From: Histomonas meleagridis 2922-C6/04-290x
Lineage: Eukaryota > Protista > Parabasalia
Assembly: GCA_020184695.1 (NCBI GenBank)
Contig: JAANOX010000153.1
Coordinates: forward strand, 930,001-994,000
Direction of reading: 5' to 3'
DNA length: 64,000 nucleotides
In this document: positions 2,102 to 56,327 of the stretch, piece by piece
Position numbering within the stretch: position 1 is the first letter of the stretch
Layout: the number at the start of each line of letters is the position of its first letter
Position numbers and translations under genes: made by a program
The notes under the pieces: generated by a model
The model's database searches: none
What the model was told of the DNA's origin: nothing
What the model saw: the letters and a program-made list of their open reading frames with translations, nothing else

Positions 2102-3004
2102 TTAAATCGGTGGTGTCACAAAGCAGTACTCTTCGCATGATCCATCTCCGCAATCAGCCCCGCATGTGTACACTAAAATCGGCCCGAAGTCCATTGGCGA
2201 GTTTGGATCGAGTTTATATATAATCGTTGGCATTAGTTCGAGCTCAAAGACTCTTTCGGCGCCGCATTTCGAACATCGCGGAACATTAATATCAACCTTC
2301 TCGGGCAGTAATGGAGTACCAAAGCGACTGTAGCGTATTACTTGCTCAGGACAACGTGACATTCGCTCATTATATTCGACAAGTTCCGGTGTAATTTCAA
2401 AATCAGGCAAATCTTCCTCATTAATTGTGGAGGCTGTTGAGTCAACAGATGACGAGATGGTAAATTGTATTCCTTTCTCTAAAAGTGCTTCAGGTTCATC
2501 AAATGTCTCAATGTAATATGCTGGAAATCGACCAATTTCTTTTTGAGGACGATTAGACTTCTTGCCTTTCTTGGGAGGTGGTTGTTTTTTATTGGTTGGA
2601 GGAGTTGTAAATGAACTTAATGCTGCAAGAAGATCGTCAGGTGATGAGGATTGATTAGAAAGATCTGAACTACCAAAAAGTGGAGTGTTCTGATTGGTTT
2701 GAGGAGCTTGTGGAGTTTCAGGAGGAGCAGATATGGATTTAACTTGGCGAAATACACGTGCTTCTTTCCCACATTTTGGACAAACAAATAAATATATAAT
2801 CCGATCAAAATCATCGTTAGTTGGACAATCGCAACTGAGAATAAGGGCTAAATTGCATTTACATTTGGTGCATTTAACTTGATTGAAATCTTTAGGTTCC
2901 CCGCAAAGCCACTTTGGAACACCACCAATTTTGGTGACACCTTCTTCGGCTGGAACATAAACTGGGTCTTCGGGAACGCCAAGTGTCACATAAGAACCAC
3001 TCAT
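2102..3004 (-). CDS. PDCD2: PDCD2/PDCD2L (Tsr4-like) uS5 chaperone
   Basis: KIGGVPKWL, CxxC...LALILSCDCP...RIIYLFVC, and C-terminal PDCD2_C (EQVIRYS...VPRCSKCGAERVFELELMP...MDFG...VYTC). Real ATG at 3004; the ORF track starts at TTG 3007. Confidence 0.85.
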   Translation of the reverse strand: MSGSYVTLGVPEDPVYVPAEEGVTKIGGVPKWLCGEPKDFNQVKCTKCKCNLALILSCDCPTNDDFDRIIYLFVCPKCGKEARVFRQVKSISAPPETPQAPQTNQNTPLFGSSDLSNQSSSPDDLLAALSSFTTPPTNKKQPPPKKGKKSNRPQKEIGRFPAYYIETFDEPEALLEKGIQFTISSSVDSTASTINEEDLPDFEITPELVEYNERMSRCPEQVIRYSRFGTPLLPEKVDINVPRCSKCGAERVFELELMPTIIYKLDPNSPMDFGPILVYTCGADCGDGSCEEYCFVTPPI

Positions 3005-3125
3005 CAAAGAAACAACCGCCAGAGTTTCACTAAGTTTGTCTGGCTAAACCAAAATCTAATAGACCGTTTAATAAACAAGAAAAATTTATGACTTTTTAAT
3101 ACAGTTTTGATCGTTGCATTCCATT

Positions 3126-4490
3126 TTAGTTTTCATCTTCTTCATGTTGGGTTGTGAGTTGCTGATAAATAATTTCAATATTTTCTCTATCACTTTCAGA
3201 GATATCTTGACTTTGTATTTGTTGGATTGAAGCAATGATATTCTCTTGATAAGGTTCAATAATCGATGAATCCAATAAAAACAAACGATGGAAATGTTTG
3301 AGTAATCCGATTATAGAATCGACACTTAAACATGGAATTATATCACAAAGGAATAAAAGACAATTTGGCTCATTTCCCACATTTGCTAATGTATTTATAT
3401 CACAAAAATCAAAGAATTTTATTAATGTTTCAGCAACATATTCTTTATTATTATATTCAATCAGATCGATTGAATCAATAATCACCGAAATTAAACCAAA
3501 ATCATAAAACTGATTCCACATTAAACTCATTAATGATTTCATAACCTCAAAAAAGATATATGCCGGTGTTGTAAAATATTGATTATAGTCATCATTTAAA
3601 ATTCTAATAAACACATCATTTGCAAAATAATCAGTATACTCATGTTGTATAAAAAGCAAAATTGATTCATATAGAGCTAAATGTTGTGTTGAGTCTGTTG
3701 TTTGAAATGCTCTCAAAAGTGACTCAGGGAGATTAAATTCAATTGAATTTTGGAAGTTTGAATCTTTTTGAATTAAATGTGAAATGATTTTCGCATCAAA
3801 TGAAACGATTCTTGAAATTGGATTCGATAATATCTCAATAAAATTATGCAAAAACTGATCAAAAACGTCACTAACATCACTTCGAACAAGAGATAAAACA
3901 AATCGAATCGTGGGATTAATAATTCCATATGGTGTTGAGTTGGAAAGAACATTTGATAAAAACAACATAAAGTTTTGGTCGAGAAAGGGCTGAAATAACA
4001 TAGGAAAATAAGATCCAACATTTGCTATAGCAGAAAGTGCAAGACGTGCCGTGTCCAAATCAGGTGAAAAACATTTTTGAAAGACTGATCCTATTAAATT
4101 AGGATCAATTAAAAGTGGTGAATAAGTTTGTATATACCAAAAATTAATTAAGAGATGAATGGTGCTATTGGCTAGTTCACCTTCACTGTTAACTAATTCA
4201 ACCATTTTTTGGATAAATTCAGGAATAAAAACAACTTCATTCGGATTGAATTGATCTGAGCTTGAAATTTTTTTCATTTCATTAAGTGATTCCAATACAT
4301 CTACATTATTTACAACATTAGCTACTAACATTGAAAAGTTTCCTAAATCACAATTAGTATTGTCTTCAATTATAGACATTTTTTCTTGCGTTGGGATCAT
4401 AGTATACTGGCTTCTTGGAAATTCAAATTCTCTTTGTGTTAAGCGAAGATTAGAGCTGTTTTTTGGTCTTTGGCTACATTTGTAATTCAT
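3126..4490 (-). CDS. ARM/HEAT-like helical repeat protein
   Basis: 454-aa intact ORF with Leu/Ile-rich helical periodicity (ARLALSAIANVG). Similar in style to 60324-61631. Confidence 0.65.
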   Translation of the reverse strand: MNYKCSQRPKNSSNLRLTQREFEFPRSQYTMIPTQEKMSIIEDNTNCDLGNFSMLVANVVNNVDVLESLNEMKKISSSDQFNPNEVVFIPEFIQKMVELVNSEGELANSTIHLLINFWYIQTYSPLLIDPNLIGSVFQKCFSPDLDTARLALSAIANVGSYFPMLFQPFLDQNFMLFLSNVLSNSTPYGIINPTIRFVLSLVRSDVSDVFDQFLHNFIEILSNPISRIVSFDAKIISHLIQKDSNFQNSIEFNLPESLLRAFQTTDSTQHLALYESILLFIQHEYTDYFANDVFIRILNDDYNQYFTTPAYIFFEVMKSLMSLMWNQFYDFGLISVIIDSIDLIEYNNKEYVAETLIKFFDFCDINTLANVGNEPNCLLFLCDIIPCLSVDSIIGLLKHFHRLFLLDSSIIEPYQENIIASIQQIQSQDISESDRENIEIIYQQLTTQHEEDEN

Positions 4491-15110: not shown

Positions 15111-17151
15111 TCAATGAACATTATTTGCATAGTCTTTTAATAATTTGAATATTTCAACATTATCCCACAAATATGCCATGTTTAGTGCTGTTTTAAATAA
15201 TTTAAACAATTTCCAAATATTAATATGAAACATCAATTTAATAAAATAGACATTAACTAAAAGTAATAAATATCCTTAGCATTGACATTAATTCCTTTTT
15301 GCTCAAGAAGTAATTTAACTATTTTCGGATGTCCATTTTTAGAAGCCGCAATAAGTGCTGTACAAAACAAAATAAATTATTTCCAAATATTATTAACAAA
15401 CTTCAAATTACAATAATAAATCAATAACATATCAAATAAATATTATCTTTAGCATTAATATCAATTCCTTTTTGTTCAAGAAGTAATTTAACTATTTTTG
15501 TTTTACCAAATTGTGATGATTTTATAAGTGCAGTGGAAAATAGTTTTAGAAAAATCCAAATCTTATTTTCAAATATTTTATTCTTTAAATAAACATAATA
15601 TAATATAAATAAATATCTTTAGCATTAATATCTATATCTTTTTGTTCAAGAAGTAGTTTAACTATTTCGATGTAACCATATACAGCTGCTAAAAAAAGTG
15701 CAGTTTCAAACTATTTGATCAAATATTAAAATATATTTGCAAATATTAAAACATAAAAATAAATATTAAATAAAACAAATATAAATTTTTTGCATTTATA
15801 TCAATTCCTTTTTGGTCAAGAAGGAATTTAACTAGATTAATACGACCATATAAAGAAGCATTAATTAATGCAGTATAAAAATATTTAAATAATTCCCGAA
15901 TAATAATTTAGAAAATAAAATGCTTAAAATAAATTTCAAACAAAATAAAATAATAATTTTATAATTAATATCAATTCCTTTATCTAAAATATATTTCACA
16001 AGTTCAACGTTTCCTGATTGAGCTGAAAATATTAAAATATTTTTTGGAAGTTCATTTTCTTTAAGGAAATGTTTGATAAGTAATAAGTTTCCAATTTTAG
16101 CTGATTCGTTTATAATATCATCATTAATTTTCATTCCTTCTTCAACTAAATATGAAAAAGCTTCATAATTATGATATAAAAAGCATTTCATGATAATTAT
16201 ATTAAAGTTATTGATTTGTTCAAGTTTATTTTCATAAAGATATTTAAAAATATCATTTTTATGGAATTTAATAGCTGTTGAATATGTTTTTTTAAATGAT
16301 GAATGATTTTGTTCACATAAATGAATAATTTCTTCATTTCCGCTTGCAACTGCATATTTGCCTGTGTTTATTACATTTGCACCATTCATAAGTAAATGTT
16401 TAAAGCATTTAACAGATCCAAAAAATGCTGCATAATCAATTAATGTAACATTTTCTTTATTAACAAAGTTACATCTTTCATAAAGTGATGGTTCAATTTT
16501 TTGATTAAAATCGAAATTTTCTTGTGATGATATTTCTTGGAGTTTTTCTATTTCATCATTTCGAATTATTTTAGCAATTTCATTTGTGTTAACTCCTTCC
16601 GCAATTAATTGTTTATGAAGTGCAAAATTATTCTTTTTGATTTCATCAATGTTCTCACTGATTAGATACATAAAACCTTCATAAAATGATAGTCCGCTCT
16701 TTGATAATTTTTCGAGTTCTTCTTCTGATAAATAATGGATAAAAAATGCTTTCGTTTTTAAAATGTTTTTGATTATACTTGATTCAAGTAAACCACGTTG
16801 AATCAGACAATCAAGAAGATAATATGATTCTTGTGAATATTTTTTAATTATAAATTGAGTAAATGCTTCAATAATTTTTGATTCGATATGATTTTTTTCT
16901 TCAAATATTTCTATTTCGTTTAGAAAATTTAAATATATGTCAGAATCGTGCCTTTTTATCACAAAAGCTATGTATACCATTTGGCTGATAATTGTGTTAA
17001 AAGATATTGGAAAATTAGTATCAAATTTGGAAATTATTAAATTTGTTGATTGAGAAAAATTTTCTTTGTTCATCCCAAAAATGCTCTGCTTAATCAATTT
17101 AAGTGTTTCCAACTCATTTTGTTGAATAGTCTTTTTTTGCTCATTTTCCAT
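15111..17151 (-). CDS. DUF3447-type ankyrin protein whose C-terminal repeats are split by 17+3-nt arrays (locus A)
   Basis: ATG 17151. After the main ORF come stop-free ankyrin blocks 15874-15785, 15704-15615, 15534-15445, 15361-15272 and a capping block 15191-15111 (TALNMAYLWDNVEIFKLLKDYANNVH*). Confidence 0.85.
15192..15954 (-). repeat. Five spacer arrays of four 20-nt units (17-nt T-rich segment + triplet)
   Basis: Spacers 15954-15875, 15784-15705, 15614-15535, 15444-15362 (83 nt), 15271-15192. Triplets read EYGY, NNNE, YNGS, (N)LEGC, NDGK. Confidence 0.9.
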
Positions 17152-17547
17152 TTTTTTATGTAGAAATGATTAAAATTTGGTCAAAAAGTCATGTCATCGA
17201 ACAAACGGCCGATTGTAATTTGAATGGACAACTGGAAATTTGAGTAAAGTGAATTAACGACAATAATTGATTATTTTGGAATTCTATCCAAATTGAGCAA
17301 TGCTTTTTTAGTTAGTTTTAGTGGTAGGTGTGTTATATTTGTTGATTTAAAATTTCTCATAGATTATATTAATTAATATATCAATTAAATTTTAATGAAA
17401 ATGATAACTGTTATGAATTATGAAATAAACAGATCACATAAAGCAAGTTTAACAACGTAAATACAAAACTCCAAGTGTTGCTAAGCATTTAAAAAAATAT
17501 TTTTTATTTATAAATATATATCAATTGTATAAAACGTTCAACTATAT

Positions 17548-17862
17548 TTAACCGAATAAATACCAAACACAGAAAAACATTAAAAATCCTATAAGTCCTA
17601 CTAGAATCAAACGATCTCTTCTTCTTCTAACTTCTATTTTTGAAGTCAAATTTCCAATAACAGGAACAGTTGAAATGATTTCACTCAATCTGCTGTTTGA
17701 ATTCCTTAAATGACTCATCTGATTATTTAATCTTTCTGTAACTAAGTTTGCTGTTTGGATAGCATCATCTGTTTTTCTTAAAGAATGCATAAGCGACTGA
17801 GATTCACTGACTTTATTATCAAGGAGAGAAGATCCTGGGGGTAAGCCACTATTTCCATACAT
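17548..17862 (-). CDS. Small Qb-type SNARE (Gos1/membrin-like)
   Basis: Heptad SNARE motif followed by RRRRDRLILVGLIGFLMFFCVWYLFG (C-terminal TM anchor). Confidence 0.75.
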   Translation of the reverse strand: MYGNSGLPPGSSLLDNKVSESQSLMHSLRKTDDAIQTANLVTERLNNQMSHLRNSNSRLSEIISTVPVIGNLTSKIEVRRRRDRLILVGLIGFLMFFCVWYLFG

Positions 17863-18284
17863 AAATTTTCATCCGTTTATTTGACCAAAATTGAGCACGT
17901 TAAGATAAAAAAATAATTAACGTGTTTTAAACGGCCGAATACTCCAGGATTTTCTTGAAGTATAAATCCGAAATAAAATTTCAGATTATTAAATAAATTT
18001 GTTTACCAACATTTTATGAAAAAATATTATTTTTTAGAAAATAGCATCATTGATGTAAGTTAAAAAAACATCAAAAATTCAGCCTACATTGATTATTTCA
18101 TTCATAATTACCACTACACCAAACAATAATTTATTTTAATTTCTCTGTTTAAGCAGGGATTGTTCAATTTTAAAGAATACACAAAGCAATTGTTTTTTTG
18201 TAATGTATTTTCAGATAACATTTCTTTATTAAATTGCCCCAAAAAGGGAAATTTTGAGTGACCAATGGTCAGACCTTTTTGGTA

Positions 18285-18848
18285 ATGGCTGAAAAAGAAA
18301 CTACTGCTCCAGTTGAAAACAAGGTTGAAGAAACCAAACCAGAAGACAAGGTTGAAGAAGTAAAGGAAGAAGAAAAAACCGAAGAAACAAAACCAGAAGA
18401 AACACCAGCACCTGCTCCACGCAAAGTATCTCGTGCAGAAAAAAAGATGAAGGAAGCTCTCCTTAAGCATAACCTTAAACCACTTGAAAAAGTATCCACT
18501 GTTATGATGAGGAAAGGTGCCCAAATCATGTGGACATTTGCTTCACCAGATGTTTATTTCATTGATGATGTTTATATTGTTTTTGGTGAACCACAAATGC
18601 AAGACCCAGGTGCAAAGGCTGTTGAACAACTTAGAAGCTCTGCTGCTGCACAAGAAGCTGCTCCAGCCGAACCAGCTGCCACTGTTGTTGAAGATGAACA
18701 AGAAGGTGAAGTTGATGCCACAGGTCTTAAGGAAGAAGATATCAACACAATCATGCAACAATCCAATGTTTCTCGTGCACGTGCTGTTCAAGCTCTCCGT
18801 GATGCCGATGGAGATTTAGTCACAGCCGTCATGAACTTGGCCTTGTAA
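18285..18848 (+). CDS. NACA: Nascent polypeptide-associated complex alpha subunit
   Basis: SRAEKKMKEAL...YIVFGEP NAC domain and C-terminal UBA-like EEDINTIMQQSNVSRARAVQALRDADGDLVTAVMNL. ATG at 18285. Confidence 0.93.
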   Translation: MAEKETTAPVENKVEETKPEDKVEEVKEEEKTEETKPEETPAPAPRKVSRAEKKMKEALLKHNLKPLEKVSTVMMRKGAQIMWTFASPDVYFIDDVYIVFGEPQMQDPGAKAVEQLRSSAAAQEAAPAEPAATVVEDEQEGEVDATGLKEEDINTIMQQSNVSRARAVQALRDADGDLVTAVMNLAL

Positions 18849-18883
18849 ACGCCACAACAAAACATATTCCAATTTTTTTCTGT

Positions 18884-20665
18884 TTATTTAGGTGCTCCTT
18901 TAGCGATAGTCGGGCAAACTTGGTTAATCAATTTCTTACCAGTTGTAATATTTGTACTTCCGACATGGATATCCACCTCGCCCTTAAATATAATTTTACC
19001 CATTTGATGAAGTAACATTACTTCAGTAGCGGTAACTCCACCAATCACAAAAACCAGGATACGTTTAGGTGCCAACCCTTCAGCTGTCACTTTTCTAACC
19101 CACTCTTGGCCGTGAATTTGATGGTCCACCCCCATTTGACACATCAGCTTTTCAACTGGGGTGCCCTTTTCCCACTTGCCACTAATTCCTGCTTGGACCA
19201 ATCGAAGTAAGATAGGTACATAAGTATCATATCCACTTTCCACATCAGTATGTTCTATGGTACCATTTTCATCTTTAATAATTTGTGGTTCTTGGAAAAC
19301 TAATTTCAATGTTTCATCCAAAGTTTGGAACTTTGGATATTTCGACTTTTCAAACAATGATTGTTCATTCACAAGTAAACCAGCGTTACCCAAATTAATT
19401 AAATCTTTGACTATAGCTGTTCCATATTTTGATATCAATCTATTTTGCGTATCTGATAATACGGATGATGGTACCCCACGTGAGATTACGCTTGTTAAAC
19501 ATAATAGTCGTAATGCATCAGACTCATCATTACTATTAATGAGACGCTTTAATAATGTTGTGTCTGGATCTTCCCTTAACATTAATGCATACTCATAGTT
19601 CATCATTGGCTTCATGTACCGATGCATTTGTAATAATTTTTCAAGAATATCAAAATGCATATCAACAAATGGAGCAAGTTCATTGAGTTTCTTGGCACGC
19701 TTGGCATGAACTGTCCATTGGCTCGTTCCTGTTGTGTTTGTCATCTTTTCTTTGATGGTTTGCATTTCATTCATAAGATCGCGTAAACGGTTTCCCGCAT
19801 CAGTGCATGACATACTTCGAATCTCGGCGAATACTTCGTCTTCGGCGTCGGCGAGTAATGTCTCTTTGACTGTCTTGCCACCACGTTTAAGGACAACGCC
19901 ATCTGGTAAATTCATAAAACCGAAATTTATTTCATATTTATCATCAAGAAAACCGCCATAGTAGAATTGGGTTAAAAGTGGAGTAAGAAGATCAACGGTT
20001 CGATCTACAATGAACATTTCATGGATTTGTGGATCTGATTGAAGAAATGCTGGTCCGACTTGTGACTTAAATTCTTCAACTAAGGTATATACGCGTGATG
20101 AGATATCACCAGCTGTGAATACTCGTGATGGAACACCATTGATAAGCTCAAGTTTAAGTAAAGATCTGGCAATTGTATATACATCACTAATGTCATCTTC
20201 AACAAAACAATGACTAAAACATTTGGGTGATGGGACTATGAAATTAAAACTATCAAGTGGAATAATCTCTAGATGGTATTCAAGTAATTGAAGTTTGATT
20301 CCTGATCTTTCAACAATTTCTTGACAAAGTGTGCTGATTCGTGGAATCATTATAAGGAATTTGTTGTAGTTGGGAATGGTTTGGAATTTTTCGCAAACAT
20401 ATTTTGCTTCTTCTGGATCATCAAGACAGAAGCAGCAAACAATACCTGAGGATTCAAGTGGTTTGAAATCTTCAAGAAAGATGATCTTTTCAAACATTGT
20501 ATTAAGACTTTGTAATGTTTTTTGTGGAAGAGCTCTCATGATGAATTGATATGTTTTTTTTAAAAATGTTAAAACTCTTGGGGTTGGGATATTGCTGACA
20601 ATGGAATTTAAATCATCGGATGCAATATTCTTGAAAATAGAATAGAGGTTGTCTTCTTCTGCCAT
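18884..20665 (-). CDS. VPS33: Sec1/Munc18 family protein, Vps33-like
   Basis: LEIIPLD, IVDRTVDLLTPLLTQFYYGGFLDD, VFAEIRSM, ILVFVIGGVTATE motifs. Confidence 0.85.
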   Translation of the reverse strand: MAEEDNLYSIFKNIASDDLNSIVSNIPTPRVLTFLKKTYQFIMRALPQKTLQSLNTMFEKIIFLEDFKPLESSGIVCCFCLDDPEEAKYVCEKFQTIPNYNKFLIMIPRISTLCQEIVERSGIKLQLLEYHLEIIPLDSFNFIVPSPKCFSHCFVEDDISDVYTIARSLLKLELINGVPSRVFTAGDISSRVYTLVEEFKSQVGPAFLQSDPQIHEMFIVDRTVDLLTPLLTQFYYGGFLDDKYEINFGFMNLPDGVVLKRGGKTVKETLLADAEDEVFAEIRSMSCTDAGNRLRDLMNEMQTIKEKMTNTTGTSQWTVHAKRAKKLNELAPFVDMHFDILEKLLQMHRYMKPMMNYEYALMLREDPDTTLLKRLINSNDESDALRLLCLTSVISRGVPSSVLSDTQNRLISKYGTAIVKDLINLGNAGLLVNEQSLFEKSKYPKFQTLDETLKLVFQEPQIIKDENGTIEHTDVESGYDTYVPILLRLVQAGISGKWEKGTPVEKLMCQMGVDHQIHGQEWVRKVTAEGLAPKRILVFVIGGVTATEVMLLHQMGKIIFKGEVDIHVGSTNITTGKKLINQVCPTIAKGAPK

Positions 20666-21229
20666 TGCAAGATGAGTTCTGTAACCGCCAAAACCGATGT
20701 CATTTCATTGAATTAAAAGTGCCAGCCGACCGTTAATTAACGTTTTCCTTTTTTCTTTGAGCATGTGATAACAAAAAACATGTTTTATAACAAATTCTTA
20801 TGCAATTATTAGTTTCATAGTTAATGCCTATCTGTGCTGTGACATTTCTTTTGGATTTAGAATAGGACATTCAAATTTTTTACTCAGCTCTTAATTTTCC
20901 ACTAGAAATGTCTATACTCATATTAAAAGCAAAATGAAAAGGTGAAATAAGATTAATGTGTACTGTTTTATTTAAACTCTTTCAACCGGGGGCAATCGTG
21001 TCTTATTACCATTTTCAAAATCCACATGGCAACGATTGTTTTTCATATCACAATTCCTTTAGAAATACAAAAGTGCTATTTTTTAAAGAATGAACCAAAA
21101 TATCTTATCGTTCAGTTTTGACTAAGCTTGTTGCCATATTTGAGAGCCACCGGCACCATGTTTGAATGATCATTCAAAAAAATTCATTTTATATTATATT
21201 TCTATATTGGAAAGAATCACTTTAGTGCA

Positions 21230-22708
21230 ATGGAATTGTATAAACTCTCGCAATCATTGGAGAATATTATTTTCAATCTCAACGAAAATAACATTGAAAC
21301 ATCAGTTCAATCGACGATTAATTTATTTGTTTTTGATTACCCTTATACATTTAATCTTCTTGTTTCCAGATTCATATACTCAGCTTTTGCTTCTAAAAGG
21401 ACTGGTGAAAATCTAACTATTCAATACATACTTTCTTTGAAAGCTCATGAAGATCAACGAAACAAAAACTCAATTCAAAATCGATATAAACAAATATATG
21501 ATATATTTCTGAAGTATTTGCGTGACATAAAAACCCAAGAATCTTTATTTCTTCTTGGAAAAATGATTGAAAAAGGATTAATTAAATCAGATTTTGTCAA
21601 AAAGATCAAAACATTATATTTTGCACATTATAAATCAAAAATAGAAATCAGCCAAACTAAACATCAATCAAAAAAATTAATTTATAAGGAATTTAAGTCA
21701 AATATTGAAGAACTTTCAAAAGATGATTGGAAACTTCATAAAGAATTAATTAAAGAAGGAGTTAATCCAAAAGAAATTGCGAAAATAATTCGAAATGATG
21801 ACATAGAAAAACTTCAAGAAATGTCATCACAACCAAATTTTAATTTTAATAAGGCAATTAAACCATCACTTTATGAAAGATATTCATTTATTAATCAATA
21901 TGATGTTACGTTAATTGATTATGCAGCATTTTTTTCTTCAGTTAAATGTTTTAAATATTTACATATGAATGGAGCAAATGTAGAAAATACATTAAAATAT
22001 GCAATTGCAGGTGGAAACTTCGAAATTATTCATTTATGCGAATCGAATAATTCATTATTTGAAGAAGAATTAGAAACGACAACTGAATTTCATCGAAATG
22101 AAGTTTTTCATTATTTTTATGATAAGAAACTTAATGAAATAAAAGATTTAAGAGAATTAGGAATTAAATGTAATAAATATAATAATTATGAAATATTTTC
22201 ATTTTTAGAAAAAGACGGAATGAAAATTGACCGAACAATAATAAACAAGTTGGAAACAATTGGAAACTCATTTTTATTGGATTAATACAATAAAAATCGA
22301 CAAATTTATCAACAAAAACAATTTAAAGTATATGCATGTGAATATAATTTAAAATTGGTAATTTCAATTGACTCTGTTGGCAGGAGTTTTGGTGGTAGAA
22401 TGGTTATATTGAACTTGAATTCGACTTTAGTATCTAAAATTCCACAAAATCAAAAGCTTCTAATTTCTGTGAATCTAGAAGATTTTATAAAAATCAAAAA
22501 TTTAATGAAAATATATGGAAATTTAACAAGTTATTATTGGCACTTGAACCATAAGTACGGATATATGCCAATTGATGAATGCTATGTAATACCTAATAAA
22601 AAAATTGACAAAACCGCACATGAAAAATGGAATGCTATAGAAAAAGTGCGTGAAGAAATAGCAAAAACTTTGTTTAATGAAAGAGCAATGATAAAAATGC
22701 TTTATTAA
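21230..22708 (+). pseudogene. DUF3447 ankyrin paralog with one in-frame TAA (22283-22285) and no spacer arrays
   Basis: ORF 21230-22285 is highly similar to loci A and B (IAKIIRNDDIEKLQEMSSQPNFNF...PSLYERYSF...LIDYAAFFSSVKCFKYL). The same frame stays open from 22286 to 22708. Confidence 0.7.
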
Positions 22709-23722
22709 AATGGTGGAAATAAATCGGCAATTTATATCAAAAAATAGAAAGAATTTTTTTTTTAATAAAAGAGTTTATTTTTTTTATGAATGTTAAATAA
22801 AGTATTTCACCAGGAAACATGAGAAAAAGAAGTTCATTCGAAGTTCCCAGTCACGTTTCAACATATTTTAACAATACTTGAGAAGTTTGATGCACCTAGT
22901 ACTAGAAACAATAATTTTTACTGCCACTGTAGTAAAATATGAAATAGAGTGTATCGAGAAAGTTGTAATCATTGGTAATTGATAAGAAGATAACATGAAA
23001 ACCTCATCATTTTGAAAGTGAATGCGATAACTTTATTTTTTAAATAAAAATTAAATAAAAATAAAATTTAACAAGAATTTCATTAAAATTTAAAATCAAA
23101 TTCAAATATCTTGGTTTTCTATTAGTATTTTAATCTTATATTTATAGTATAGTTTTGATATGTTATCTACATTATATTTTTAAAAATAGACAAAAAAAAA
23201 TCATTATAACAATATGAATACATGTTCTTCTTGTAAATAATTCCAATAAACATATAGACATACGTCATCTTGAGAAATATCATTACTACATTGATGTGTC
23301 CCGCAAATAACATTATTTATATCATCAAGACATTCTTTTGACATATGTCTTTCAACATATACACAAGCTTAATGAGCTTGCATTAGTAACTGGAATCTGT
23401 TCTATTCCATATTTTTTCGAGTCTCTTCAATTAAAGCAATATCGTCTCTATCAGGTTCATTATCAAAATATGAATGAATTGTATATGTTAATTTATTAAG
23501 TGTTGTGTGACACCGAACCAACAAAACAGGTATTAAAGAATTTTATTTATTCTTGAACATATTATAAAATTATTAAAGATTAAAAATTAAATTTACATAT
23601 CAGGATCTCATTTTAAAACTTCTAAATAGTTATTTGAATAATTTATTAAGATATTTTCTTTTCATCTACAAAGATTTGAATCATCAGCTTTAGTTTTTTT
23701 AATCATTGAATAAATTGTTTCT

Positions 23723-26111
23723 TTATTTCATATCTTCCAATTTTTTAGCGAGCAAATTTGCGATTTCAATATGATTATGGTATTCTGCTAATTTTTGTGC
23801 TTTAGAAAATATTATTTTGAAACAAAAAAATATATTAATAAACATCAAATTAATGAAAGAAATATTTTTAGTATAGAAATAAATACTATTAGAATGAAGA
23901 AGATATTTAACTATATCTATGTAACCTTTTTCAGATGCATGTGTAAGAGCTTTATAATATAATTTAAATAATTTCCAAATATTATTTTGTAATCCAAAAT
24001 TATAAAGATAAATATCAAATAAAACAAATAAATATCTTTAGCATTAATATCAATTCCTTCTTGTTCAAGAAGTAATTTAACTATTTCAGTAAAACCACTT
24101 GAAGCTGCTAATATAAGTGCTGTTTCAAATATATTAAAAAAATTCCATATTTTGTTGTAAAATATCAAAATATTAAAATATATTTTATACAAAATAATAA
24201 AACATCTTTTGCATTGACATCAATTACTTTTTTCTCGAGAAGTAATTTGACTATTTCTGTGTGTCCTTGGCCTGAAGCTTTCATAAGTGGTGTTTCAAAT
24301 ATTTTAAATGAGCTTCATAATATATTTTGAAATCCAAAATTAAAAAATTAAATAGCAAACATGATATTTATACATTTTTAGCTTTTAAATCAATTTCTTT
24401 TCGATCTAGAAGTAATTTAACCACTTCTTTATTACCATTTTCTGATGCAAACATAAGTGCTGAATAAAATATTTTAAGCAATTTCCAAATTAAATTTTTA
24501 AATATCAAAAATTTTAAATGAATTCTAAAATAATCAAAAAAATGTTTTTTTGATTAATTTCAATTTTGTTTTGTTCAAGAAGAATTTTAATTATATCTGT
24601 CGCATCATGTTCAGATGCGATTATAAGTGCTGTTTCAAAATTAAATAGTAATTTCTAAACATTATTTTAAAATATCGTATTATTTAAATTATAATTAAGT
24701 TGAAGATATAAATATTTTTAGCATTTATATTAATTCCTTTTTGCTCAAGAAGTAATTTAAAAAGTTCAATATCACCAATTCTAGCAGCCACTATAAGAGC
24801 TGTATCAAATGATTTGAACAAATTCCAAATAATATATGAAGATATCAAAAATATAATATAAATATCAAATGAAATAATAAAATATTTTTAGAATTAAGAT
24901 TAATAACTTTTTGTTCTAAAACATACTTAACAAGCTCAATGTTACCTGATTCTACTGTAAAAACAAAAATATTTTTAGGAATTTTATTATTTTGTAAAAA
25001 ATATTTTACAAGATAGAAGTTACCAATTTTTGCTGAAAGATTAATCATTGATTCATCAATTTTCATCCCAACTTTTAACAAAAATGAAAGAATTTCATAA
25101 TTCCCACATTTAATACATAAATTTCCAAATTTAATAATGTTATTAGGATTAATTTCTTTCTTTAGATGTTTTTTATTTTCATAAAGATATTTAAAGATAT
25201 CATTTTGATGAAATATAATTGCTGTTTCATATGCATTTTGAAAAGAGATATGATTTTGTTCACATAAATGAATAATTTCTAAATTTCCACCTGCAATTGC
25301 ATATTTACCTGTATCTTCTACATTTGCACCCATCATAAGTAAATATTTAAAACATTTAACTGAAGAAAAAAAATGCTGCAATATCAATTAATGATACATT
25401 TTCTTCATTAATAAATGAATACCTTTCATAAAGTGATGGTTCAATTTTTTGTTTGAAAAAAATATTTGGTTGTGATGACATTTCTTGAAGTTTTTCTATG
25501 TCATCATTTCGAATTATTTTCACAATTTCATTCTGATTTATTCCTTCTTTAACATATTTCTTATGAAGTTCCCAATCATTTTTCTTTAGTTCAATAAAAT
25601 CATGATTTGGACTCCCGAAAAATATGCACCTTTCGATACCATCATCTTTTTCATATTCACCTTCTGGTTTATAATGCGCAAAATATTCAGAATCAATGTT
25701 TTTAGCAATATCTGAATTTATTAAATTCCGCTCAATCATTTGTTCAATTATATAATATGATTCATGTGATTCTATCTCAGATAAATAATAAGAAAAAGTT
25801 TCTATAATTTTGGGTGAATTTTTGTTGAGTTCTTCTTCTTTAGTTTGTATTGTTTCTAAATATTTTATGTAAATATCAATTTCTTTCTTTAGTGAACAAA
25901 ATGCATAATAAACTAAGGTAATAATAACAGAATTGAATGAATGGAAATTTGAATCAAATAATTTCATTGTTTGATCTATTGATAATTCAAAATTATTTTC
26001 ATCGAGATTAAACACAACATGTTTGAGTTCAATAAGAAAATCAATATAGGAAGAGTCTATTTCATCATAATTTTTTGTTGAAGTATCACTTTTGGATCTG
26101 TTGCTTCTCAT
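23723..26111 (-). CDS. DUF3447-type ankyrin protein whose C-terminal repeats are split by 17+3-nt arrays (locus B)
   Basis: ATG 26111. One extra base in the A8 run at 25366-25373 splits the N-terminal ORF. Six stop-free 30-codon blocks start at 24803, 24633, 24463, 24293, 24123 and 23953 (period exactly 170 nt), then a capping block 23803-23723. Confidence 0.85.
23804..24883 (-). repeat. Seven spacer arrays of 20-nt units (six of 80 nt, one of 60 nt)
   Basis: Spacers 24883-24804, 24713-24634, 24543-24464, 24373-24294, 24203-24124, 24033-23954, 23863-23804. Triplets read DDGD, NDRE, RDGY, AWEE, KDGE, DWGY, DFS. Confidence 0.92.
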
Positions 26112-55960: not shown

Positions 55961-56327
55961 ATGAAATATGTATCAGAACAAAAAGTAATTGATGTTAATG
56001 CGAAATATATGCATTTTAATAATTTGAAATATGTTTTAATAATTTGAAACAGCACTTTATATAGCAGTTAAAAATAATAATATAGAAATAGTAAAATTAC
56101 TCTTAGATAAAGGAATTGATGTTAATGCAAAATATATTCATATGAATAATTTTATATATGTTTTAATAATTTGGAATATGTTTAAATGATATTTTACTGT
56201 GATTCAAATTGCAAAACAAAAAGGTTTCATAGAAATATTAAATTTACTTCGTGAAAAAAATATAAACAAAAATTCTCAATCAAATTCATCTTTAATCTAC
56301 ATCACATTCAATAAGAAATGGAAATGA
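55961..56327 (+). pseudogene. Truncated ankyrin tail with 40- and 60-nt spacer arrays (locus C)
   Basis: Blocks 55961-56008, 56049-56135, 56196-56327. Spacers 56009-56048 (triplets E,E) and 56136-56195 (Y,G,F). The DUF3447 N-terminus is missing. Confidence 0.75.

Follow-up and report, generated by a model that had tools for sequence, protein, structure and literature searches.

Seventeen-nucleotide elements in ankyrin genes of Histomonas meleagridis, present in DNA and absent from RNA

Ankyrin genes and their arrays

The window considered here is a 64,000-nucleotide (nt) stretch of contig JAANOX010000153.1 of Histomonas meleagridis 2922-C6/04-290x, A+T-rich with about 30% G+C. It contains genes of the parabasalid DUF3447/ankyrin family, whose repeat regions are interrupted by arrays of a 17-nt element, the subject of this study. 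Two of the genes, denoted here loci A and B, lie on the minus strand and share one layout, in which an uninterrupted N-terminal part is followed by 90-nt ankyrin (ANK) exons split by spacers; in locus B the ANK exon period is exactly 170 nt (90 + 80). The Pfam domains DUF3447 and Ank were found on homologues of the locus A protein.

15111–17151, minus strand: locus A gene, translated as a DUF3447/ankyrin protein, the stop codon ending at 15111
15976–17151, minus strand: N-terminal part of locus A, 392 codons without a break, with the ANK exons and five arrays after it
15272–15361, 15445–15534, 15615–15704 and 15785–15874, minus strand: ANK exons of locus A
23723–26111, minus strand: locus B gene, DUF3447/ankyrin paralogue of locus A with seven arrays
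near 55961–56327, plus strand: locus C, a third, shorter ankyrin copy

In an independent parse, the spacers between the ANK exons were divided into 20-nt units (17 + 3), with the last exon codon as the anchor point. Locus A has five arrays of four units, locus B six arrays of four units and one of three, and locus C arrays of two and three units, which yields 52 elements, each 17 nt long. The three nucleotides following each element form the kept codon.

15192–15954, minus strand: arrays of locus A overall
15875–15954, minus strand: array A0, four times a 17-nt element plus a codon, kept GAA TAT GGG TAT (EYGY)
15705–15784, minus strand: array A1, kept AAT AAT AAT GAA (NNNE)
15535–15614, minus strand: array A2, kept TAT AAT GGA TCC (YNGS)
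15362–15441, minus strand: array A3, kept TTG GAA GGA TGT (LEGC)
15192–15271, minus strand: array A4, kept AAT GAT GGA AAA (NDGK), the only array with letters read directly in RNA
23804–24883, minus strand: arrays of locus B overall
24804–24883, minus strand: array B0, kept GAT GAT GGA GAT (DDGD)
24634–24713, minus strand: array B1, kept AAT GAT AGA GAA (NDRE)
24464–24543, minus strand: array B2, kept AGA GAT GGA TAT (RDGY)
24294–24373, minus strand: array B3, kept GCT TGG GAA GAA (AWEE)
24124–24203, minus strand: array B4, kept AAA GAT GGA GAA (KDGE)
23954–24033, minus strand: array B5, kept GAT TGG GGA TAT (DWGY)
23804–23863, minus strand: array B6, three units, kept GAT TTT TCT
56009–56048, plus strand: array C1, two units, kept GAA GAA, resembling a near-tandem 20-nt duplication
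56136–56195, plus strand: array C2, three units, kept TAT GGA TTT

The A3 spacer measures 83 nt, since an extra exon codon, AAT (15442–15444), precedes the array. In locus C, Tandem Repeats Finder reports a period of 20 at 56145–56187, where adjacent 20-nt units are near-identical, as they also are at 56009–56048; hence arrays may grow via tandem duplication of an element together with its codon.

The kept triplets differ from the rest of the 20-nt unit. They hold 50 G+C letters out of 156, compared to 4–25 at the offsets inside the elements, and none of the 52 is a stop codon, while some other offsets yield up to 13 stops in 52; with the relatives described below, there are no stops among 72 kept codons. 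The third kept codon encodes glycine in 13 of 16 four-unit arrays, which is the position of the conserved glycine of the ANK loop, and the kept codons translate as ANK loops, for instance NDGK, KDGE, RDGY and DDGD.

The counts given for the elements in the initial annotation were reproduced exactly by our parse. Over the 52 window elements the 5' dinucleotide is AT in 33, GT in eight, AA in six and another in five; the 3' end is TT in 42 and the last base is T in 48, whereas AG is found in none, and the ACTAAC branch motif is present in none of the parsed spacers. When 20 elements of the relatives are added, AT starts 42 of 72 elements and GT 13 of 72, and with all equivalent cut positions allowed, 0 of 72 can end in AG, so that a GT-AG pair is possible in none. 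The position matrix reads R1-T2-T3-T4 ... R14-T15-T16-T17, with A enriched at positions 9–11 and 14. The elements are about 90% A+T, C making up about 5% of their letters, and nearby non-coding DNA has 22–30% G+C. The length is constant: 72 of 72 elements measure 17 nt, although protein identity between the loci is only 36–49% in the N-terminal domain. This is the narrow length distribution near the lower limit that marks the minimal-length (Stentor-like) intron class.

Neither the GT and AG ends nor the fused ACTAAC of U2-type introns in their parabasalid form characterise the elements, whereas precise removal from RNA with presence in DNA does, as described below. Moreover, the parabasalid 3' motif ACTAACACACAG does not occur anywhere in the window with at most two mismatches. 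The U12-type AT-AC description (5' ATATCC, 3' AC, branch site TCCTTAAC) does not fit either, as the 5' consensus is ATTT and an AC end is seen in 1 of 72 elements. As for predicted RNA structure, the folds of eleven spacers with flanks are no more stable than those of shuffled sequences (z from −1.33 to +0.47) and differ from one spacer to another, while the 23-mers around the elements have a mean predicted energy of −0.40 kcal/mol versus −0.39 kcal/mol in shuffles. The predicted folds lend no support to a helix of the bulge-helix-bulge type or an IRE1-type stem-loop at the cut sites.

Comparison of DNA and RNA contigs

Runs labelled with one organism contain this DNA; they come from two DNA samples of 2021, a small RNA set of 2013 and four samples of 2023 that are probably RNA. 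Contigs of three RNA runs (X3, X4, X5) and one DNA run (X1) were placed on positions 23650–25150, and locus B is transcribed and processed in all three RNA runs. The X1 DNA contigs follow the window colinearly and include the spacers, one of them (record 6, 464 nt, unbranched) passing across three arrays. The RNA contigs match locus B with no mismatches in blocks of 93–94 nt with 8–9 unplaced letters between them; four successive exons are matched in this way. The period inside the RNA contigs is exactly 102 nt (34 codons), and the genomic skip is 76–77 nt per spacer, so 68 nt (4 × 17) are absent from RNA. At the last array, B6, 51 nt (3 × 17) are absent and three letters are left. The 17-nt elements are present in DNA and absent from RNA.

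The pieces of the RNA contigs at the arrays of locus B are as follows (minus strand).

Array B0: 24884–25111, nine letters, 24731–24806 (X3 record 13, X5 record 21), matching the simulation described below
Array B1: 24543–24697 in X4 record 15; X5 record 20 and X3 record 12 start at 24636
Array B2: 24543–24636, eight letters, 24373–24466
Array B3: 24373–24466, eight letters, 24204–24296
Array B4: 24204–24296, nine letters, 24062–24126
Array B6, form 1: 23864, three letters, 23809 (X4 record 14, X3 record 9)
Array B6, form 2: 23864, two letters, 23827 (X5 record 19)

In the simulation, the mRNA expected under the 17 + 3 model was mapped back to the genome with maximal exact extension. It reproduces all observed piece boundaries and all counts of unplaced letters; it also yields the extensions by one to three letters, due to chance identity, at 24543, 24373, 23809 and 23827. 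In five arrays the RNA pieces show the final cut immediately behind TTT, the interior cut sites being resolved to within one or two bases.

The kept codons themselves are read in array A4. An X4 contig placed at 24718 overlaps a locus B exon end and continues for 255 further letters, and its consensus in the sense direction reads GGAT AAT GAT GGA AAA ACAGCACTAAACAT (AAGGAT-AAT-GAT-GGA-AAA-ACAGCAC), that is, the codons of array A4. The flanks GCTAAGGAT and ACAGCACTAAACAT are single-copy in the window and lie on either side of A4 (15272–15280 and 15178–15191). The twelve kept letters are contiguous nowhere in the window, the codons being 17 nt apart in DNA. Single-codon exons are present in RNA for array A4; the piece boundaries and the arithmetic of the skips point to them in the other arrays as well.

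These contigs bear on the claims of the initial annotation. It had proposed the 17-nt element, devoid of GT-AG or branch signals, as the removed unit, and this is borne out by the RNA contigs, which fit the 17 + 3 parse at every boundary. It had also named two findings that would speak against this proposal. One, a single ordinary GT-AG intron in cDNA, is absent from the RNA contigs and is excluded, since unplaced letters stand between the RNA blocks. The other, an assembly artefact, is excluded because the spacers also stand, in colinear order, in DNA contigs from an independent run.

Several partially processed forms were observed. Array B6 has two isoforms whose difference is exactly its element 3 (23807–23823, 17 nt). 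Array B5 retains its element 4 (23957–23973), which ends with TAT and not TTT, in contigs of X4 and X5, and the frame is broken. The B5 pieces, 23864–23976, end exactly at the GGA codon (X4 record 14, X5 record 19), in agreement with a simulation in which element 4 is kept. Elements 2–4 of array B1 are kept in one X4 contig, in which the next two arrays are fully processed. The joint from 23993 to 24033 was found in 13 RNA contigs and no DNA contigs; these represent paralogues with elements 1 and 2 gone and element 3 kept. In three of the three informative partial forms, upstream elements are removed and a downstream one is left, which suggests stepwise removal from 5' to 3' inside an array. 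As for element 4 of array B5, its retention shifts the frame into a stop codon and would truncate the protein before the last two ANK repeats; other elements with a TAT end, however, are removed.

Other ways of cutting the spacers were considered and rejected. The first parse placed a 12-nt micro-exon (ATATTTGGAAAT, xFGx), contiguous in DNA, between an intron of 51 nt and one of 17 nt. This parse was discarded because the B5 RNA pieces stop at GGA and do not run into ATATTT, because a stop codon falls into array B2, and because the A4 letters seen in RNA (AATGATGGAAAA) are non-contiguous in DNA. Moving the whole parse by +1 or −1 conflicts with the piece boundaries at B4 and B0. GT-AG alternatives, such as a 20-nt GT..AG cut in A4, are not general and shorten the loop.

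Mechanism of removal

A full-text literature search returned no description of such elements, and several known systems offer partial parallels. Ultra-short spliceosomal introns are known in Stentor coeruleus (15 nt) and Bigelowiella natans (18 nt), and the type B introns of Trichomonas vaginalis and T. stableri have 23–28 nt; every one of the 63 introns verified in Trichomonas has GT/AG ends and a fused ACTAA branch site, and the shortest has 23 nt (PMC12316389). Like these introns, the Histomonas elements are tiny, A+T-rich, uniform in length and removed from RNA, and their length is no multiple of three, so that retention breaks the frame; T. vaginalis is, moreover, a parabasalid, as is H. 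meleagridis. The introns of Stentor and Bigelowiella, the latter residing in the nucleomorph, are GT-AG, and minimal spliceosomal introns typically fall into a single sharp length class. The difference is that all these ultra-short introns are GT-AG, while the Histomonas elements are RT...TT and never end in AG. Parabasalid introns have the branch motif fused to the 3' end and number at most one or two per gene, whereas here there are up to 27 per gene, separated by single codons. The H. meleagridis genome paper gives at most one intron per gene (PMC8529796).

Recursive splicing and 1–3-nt micro-exons resemble the arrays in that stepwise removal creates the next 5' junction and in that 3-nt exons exist. 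In animals and plants they involve canonical AG|GT ratchet sites and long introns, and we know of no arrays of four 3-nt exons between 17-nt introns in such systems. The non-canonical introns of Fritillaria borealis, removed by a modified U2 spliceosome, and the nonconventional introns of euglenids are likewise lost from nuclear mRNA without GT-AG ends and on a genome-wide scale. These introns are variable in length, and in euglenids the ends pair into a stable structure, whereas the Histomonas elements have a fixed length and no predicted structure.

We think, with moderate confidence, that the elements are intervening sequences of nuclear pre-mRNA, each excised singly, and that the machine is likely the spliceosome in a tiny-intron mode. 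Each 17-nt element would be cut from RNA as a unit of its own, a single codon being left between neighbours, and four elements with four codons (80 nt of DNA) would thereby give a four-residue beta-hairpin loop (x-x-G-x) of a 34-residue ankyrin repeat. What sets an element apart is a purine plus TTT at either end, an A-rich stretch between the two, the A+T content of about 90% and the 17-nt length. Removal would proceed from 5' to 3' within an array, every excision making the next substrate as in recursive splicing. This lineage-specific mode of the spliceosome would accept A or G at position +1 and U-U in place of A-G at the 3' end. Presence in DNA, absence from RNA, the 17-nt step and the kept codons of one array are direct observations, whereas the order of removal and the machine are inferred. 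Judged from sequence, the 5' end RTTTRT resembles the parabasalid GTAYGT, and the A-rich positions 4–9 nt from the U-rich 3' end recall a compressed spliceosomal intron. The data favour post-transcriptional stepwise removal, and they do not name the enzyme; we favour a divergent spliceosomal mode at about even confidence.

Several points weigh against this account. GT is found in only 13 of 72 elements, AG in 0 of 72 and ACTAAC in none, and with 17-nt introns only 3 nt apart there is hardly any room for splice sites to be recognised simultaneously. The evidence consists of assembled Logan contigs from one RNA study with the library type marked 'RNA?'. The kept letters come from one array only, as a 30-letter consensus of one contig, and the 5'-to-3' order is based on just three informative partial isoforms.

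The initial annotation had listed five candidate mechanisms, of which a divergent spliceosome, a length-measuring endonuclease with a ligase, and polymerase skipping remain, whereas ribosomal bypassing and excision of the internal eliminated sequence (IES) type are contradicted by the RNA and DNA contigs. In the endonuclease scheme, the main rival but in our view rather unlikely, a length-measuring endonuclease cuts both ends of the U-rich 17-nt element and a ligase of the RtcB or tRNA-ligase type joins the resulting ends. The complete lack of GT-AG and branch signals, the strict length of 17 nt, kept by 72 of 72 elements in spite of their divergence, and the similar RTTT motif at either end all agree with it, as does the difficulty of reconciling 3-nt exons with spliceosome assembly; a non-spliceosomal mRNA intron of similar size, 26 nt, exists in XBP1. 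Introns of the tRNA (bulge-helix-bulge) type and those processed by IRE1 and RtcB (HAC1, and XBP1 with 26 nt) are likewise small and without GT-AG. However, they are removed by an endonuclease and a ligase once per RNA and need defined helices or loops, and the known enzymes read structure (a bulge-helix-bulge, or paired stem-loops for IRE1), while here the spacers and the 23-mers fold like shuffles and no such fold is predicted. We know of no endonuclease/ligase system that acts dozens of times per mRNA, and the elements seem to carry degenerate splice signals in their RTTTRT start and A-rich middle. A previously unknown excision system of histomonad parabasalids that is non-spliceosomal and processive, reads the length and RUUU ends of U-rich 17-nt units and would define a new intron class with its own enzymes is a tentative possibility; if such an excision is real, protein loops would be built from single-codon exons.

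Skipping during transcription, in which RNA polymerase II jumps each T-rich 17-nt stretch so that in most molecules the elements are untranscribed, is very improbable. The weak RNA-DNA hybrids that U-rich elements would give, the fixed step length and the apparent 5'-to-3' order suit it; however, re-priming needs homology at the landing site, and the cut slides by at most one base at most junctions. Indeed, microhomology is nearly absent, the left slide being 0 or 1 base in 66 of 72 junctions and the right slide 0 bases in 53 of 72. Moreover, retained elements beside fully processed arrays are what unfinished processing predicts, and we know of no precedent for precise programmed skipping by a nuclear polymerase. 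The same scarcity of microhomology bears on an artefact or another template, namely RNA from uninterrupted paralogues or processed copies, template switching by reverse transcriptase, or assembly errors, the interrupted loci being pseudogenes. In favour of this, which we hold to be very improbable, the family is multicopy with heavy cross-mapping of paralogous contigs, the N-terminal part of locus B has a frameshift, and only contigs are at hand, the DNA joints being judged among those listed (78 more exist). Still, template switching is unlikely, since the slide is mostly at most one base, the three libraries agree and the frame needs the removal. Uninterrupted paralogues are an unlikely source of the RNA, as four locus B exons are matched without mismatches, the 464-nt DNA contig runs unbranched through exons and spacers, and among the joints listed the DNA graph is unbranched at the exon ends. 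Protein-level selection on the kept codons and a layout conserved in diverged relatives are not expected of decaying pseudogenes. Finally, programmed ribosomal bypassing or IES-like excision from DNA is hardly credible, even though the fixed-length non-coding gaps in otherwise open reading frames speak for it. The bypass elements of T4 gene 60 and the byps of yeast mitochondria, as well as ciliate IESs, are also short frame-breaking inserts in coding sequence, but bypass elements remain in mRNA and IESs leave DNA, whereas the Histomonas elements leave RNA and remain in DNA. The absence of the elements from RNA contigs excludes bypassing; their presence in one unbranched DNA contig and the retention of single elements in RNA isoforms exclude DNA excision.

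Should raw reads bear this out, the elements would form the first intron class in which a fixed length of 17 nt, the lack of GT-AG, single-codon exons and dozens of copies in a gene come together, and this in a lineage regarded as nearly intron-free. It bears on the minimal size and signal content of introns and on the use of splice sites 3 nt apart, and provides a concrete system for asking whether the spliceosome works without the G+1/G-1 pair. The removal step is particular to this parasite lineage, and it could be studied from that angle. The elements are invisible to intron pipelines that require GT-AG and the parabasalid motif (as in PMC12316389). As a result, the ankyrin genes of this parasite and of related organisms carry annotations of shortened proteins whose ends run into the first spacer (seen for P0001, P0002, P0008 and P0014).

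Related genes and other features of the window

The N-terminal domain of locus A has homologues on metagenome contigs at 36–54% identity, whose predicted proteins end by reading through into the spacer. The first spacers in four of these contigs (L001, L002, L004 and L005) show the same build of four 17 + 3 nt units, with the kept codons HDGS, SSGY, YGGE, NNGH and RAGY. All 20 of 20 elements are 17 nt long and start with A or G, and 0 of 20 end in AG. As a Vps33 homologue from the same assembly series as L001 shows 78% identity, at least some of these contigs probably belong to related species. In L001 (1830–1870) the first ANK loop (SKN-VMFE-SAL) is uninterrupted and the next one has four elements; hence elements can be absent from single loops.

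In Tritrichomonas foetus, the gene model of the homologue TRFO_08250 (L003, MLAK01000993.1; regions 2990–3190, 4060–4100 and 4180–4230) breaks off within an ANK loop, the repeats being resumed by the next called gene; no clear 17 + 3 layout was found there. Two later loops are unusually long, T-rich and hydrophobic (10–16 residues). The long loops of T. foetus may be related intervening sequences of another length.

The N-terminal open reading frame of locus B has one extra T in a T-run at 25366–25375 (minus strand), which breaks the frame (AAFFFFS followed by a stop); a related gene at 21230–22286 on the plus strand has an unbroken AAFFSSVKCFKYL. Either locus B is a pseudogene, or the long-read assembly contains a homopolymer error here; the gene is still transcribed and processed. 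A query of 160 residues from locus B had no match in the protein collection. Outside the ankyrin genes, a scan for lone elements able to restore open reading frames in genes of the window gave only chance matches, antisense to real genes.

18887–20665: open reading frame similar to Sec1/Vps33

An Rfam scan of the window gave no match. In three intergenic regions (17205–17259, 17915–17937 and 20731–20742), a short way upstream of gene starts, AATTAACG has eight matches versus 4.0 expected, and ACGGCCG occurs twice versus 0.44 expected; in one case the recurrence takes the form of the palindrome CGTTAATTAACG. The recurrence of AATTAACG and ACGGCCG is a weak signal, possibly a promoter motif.

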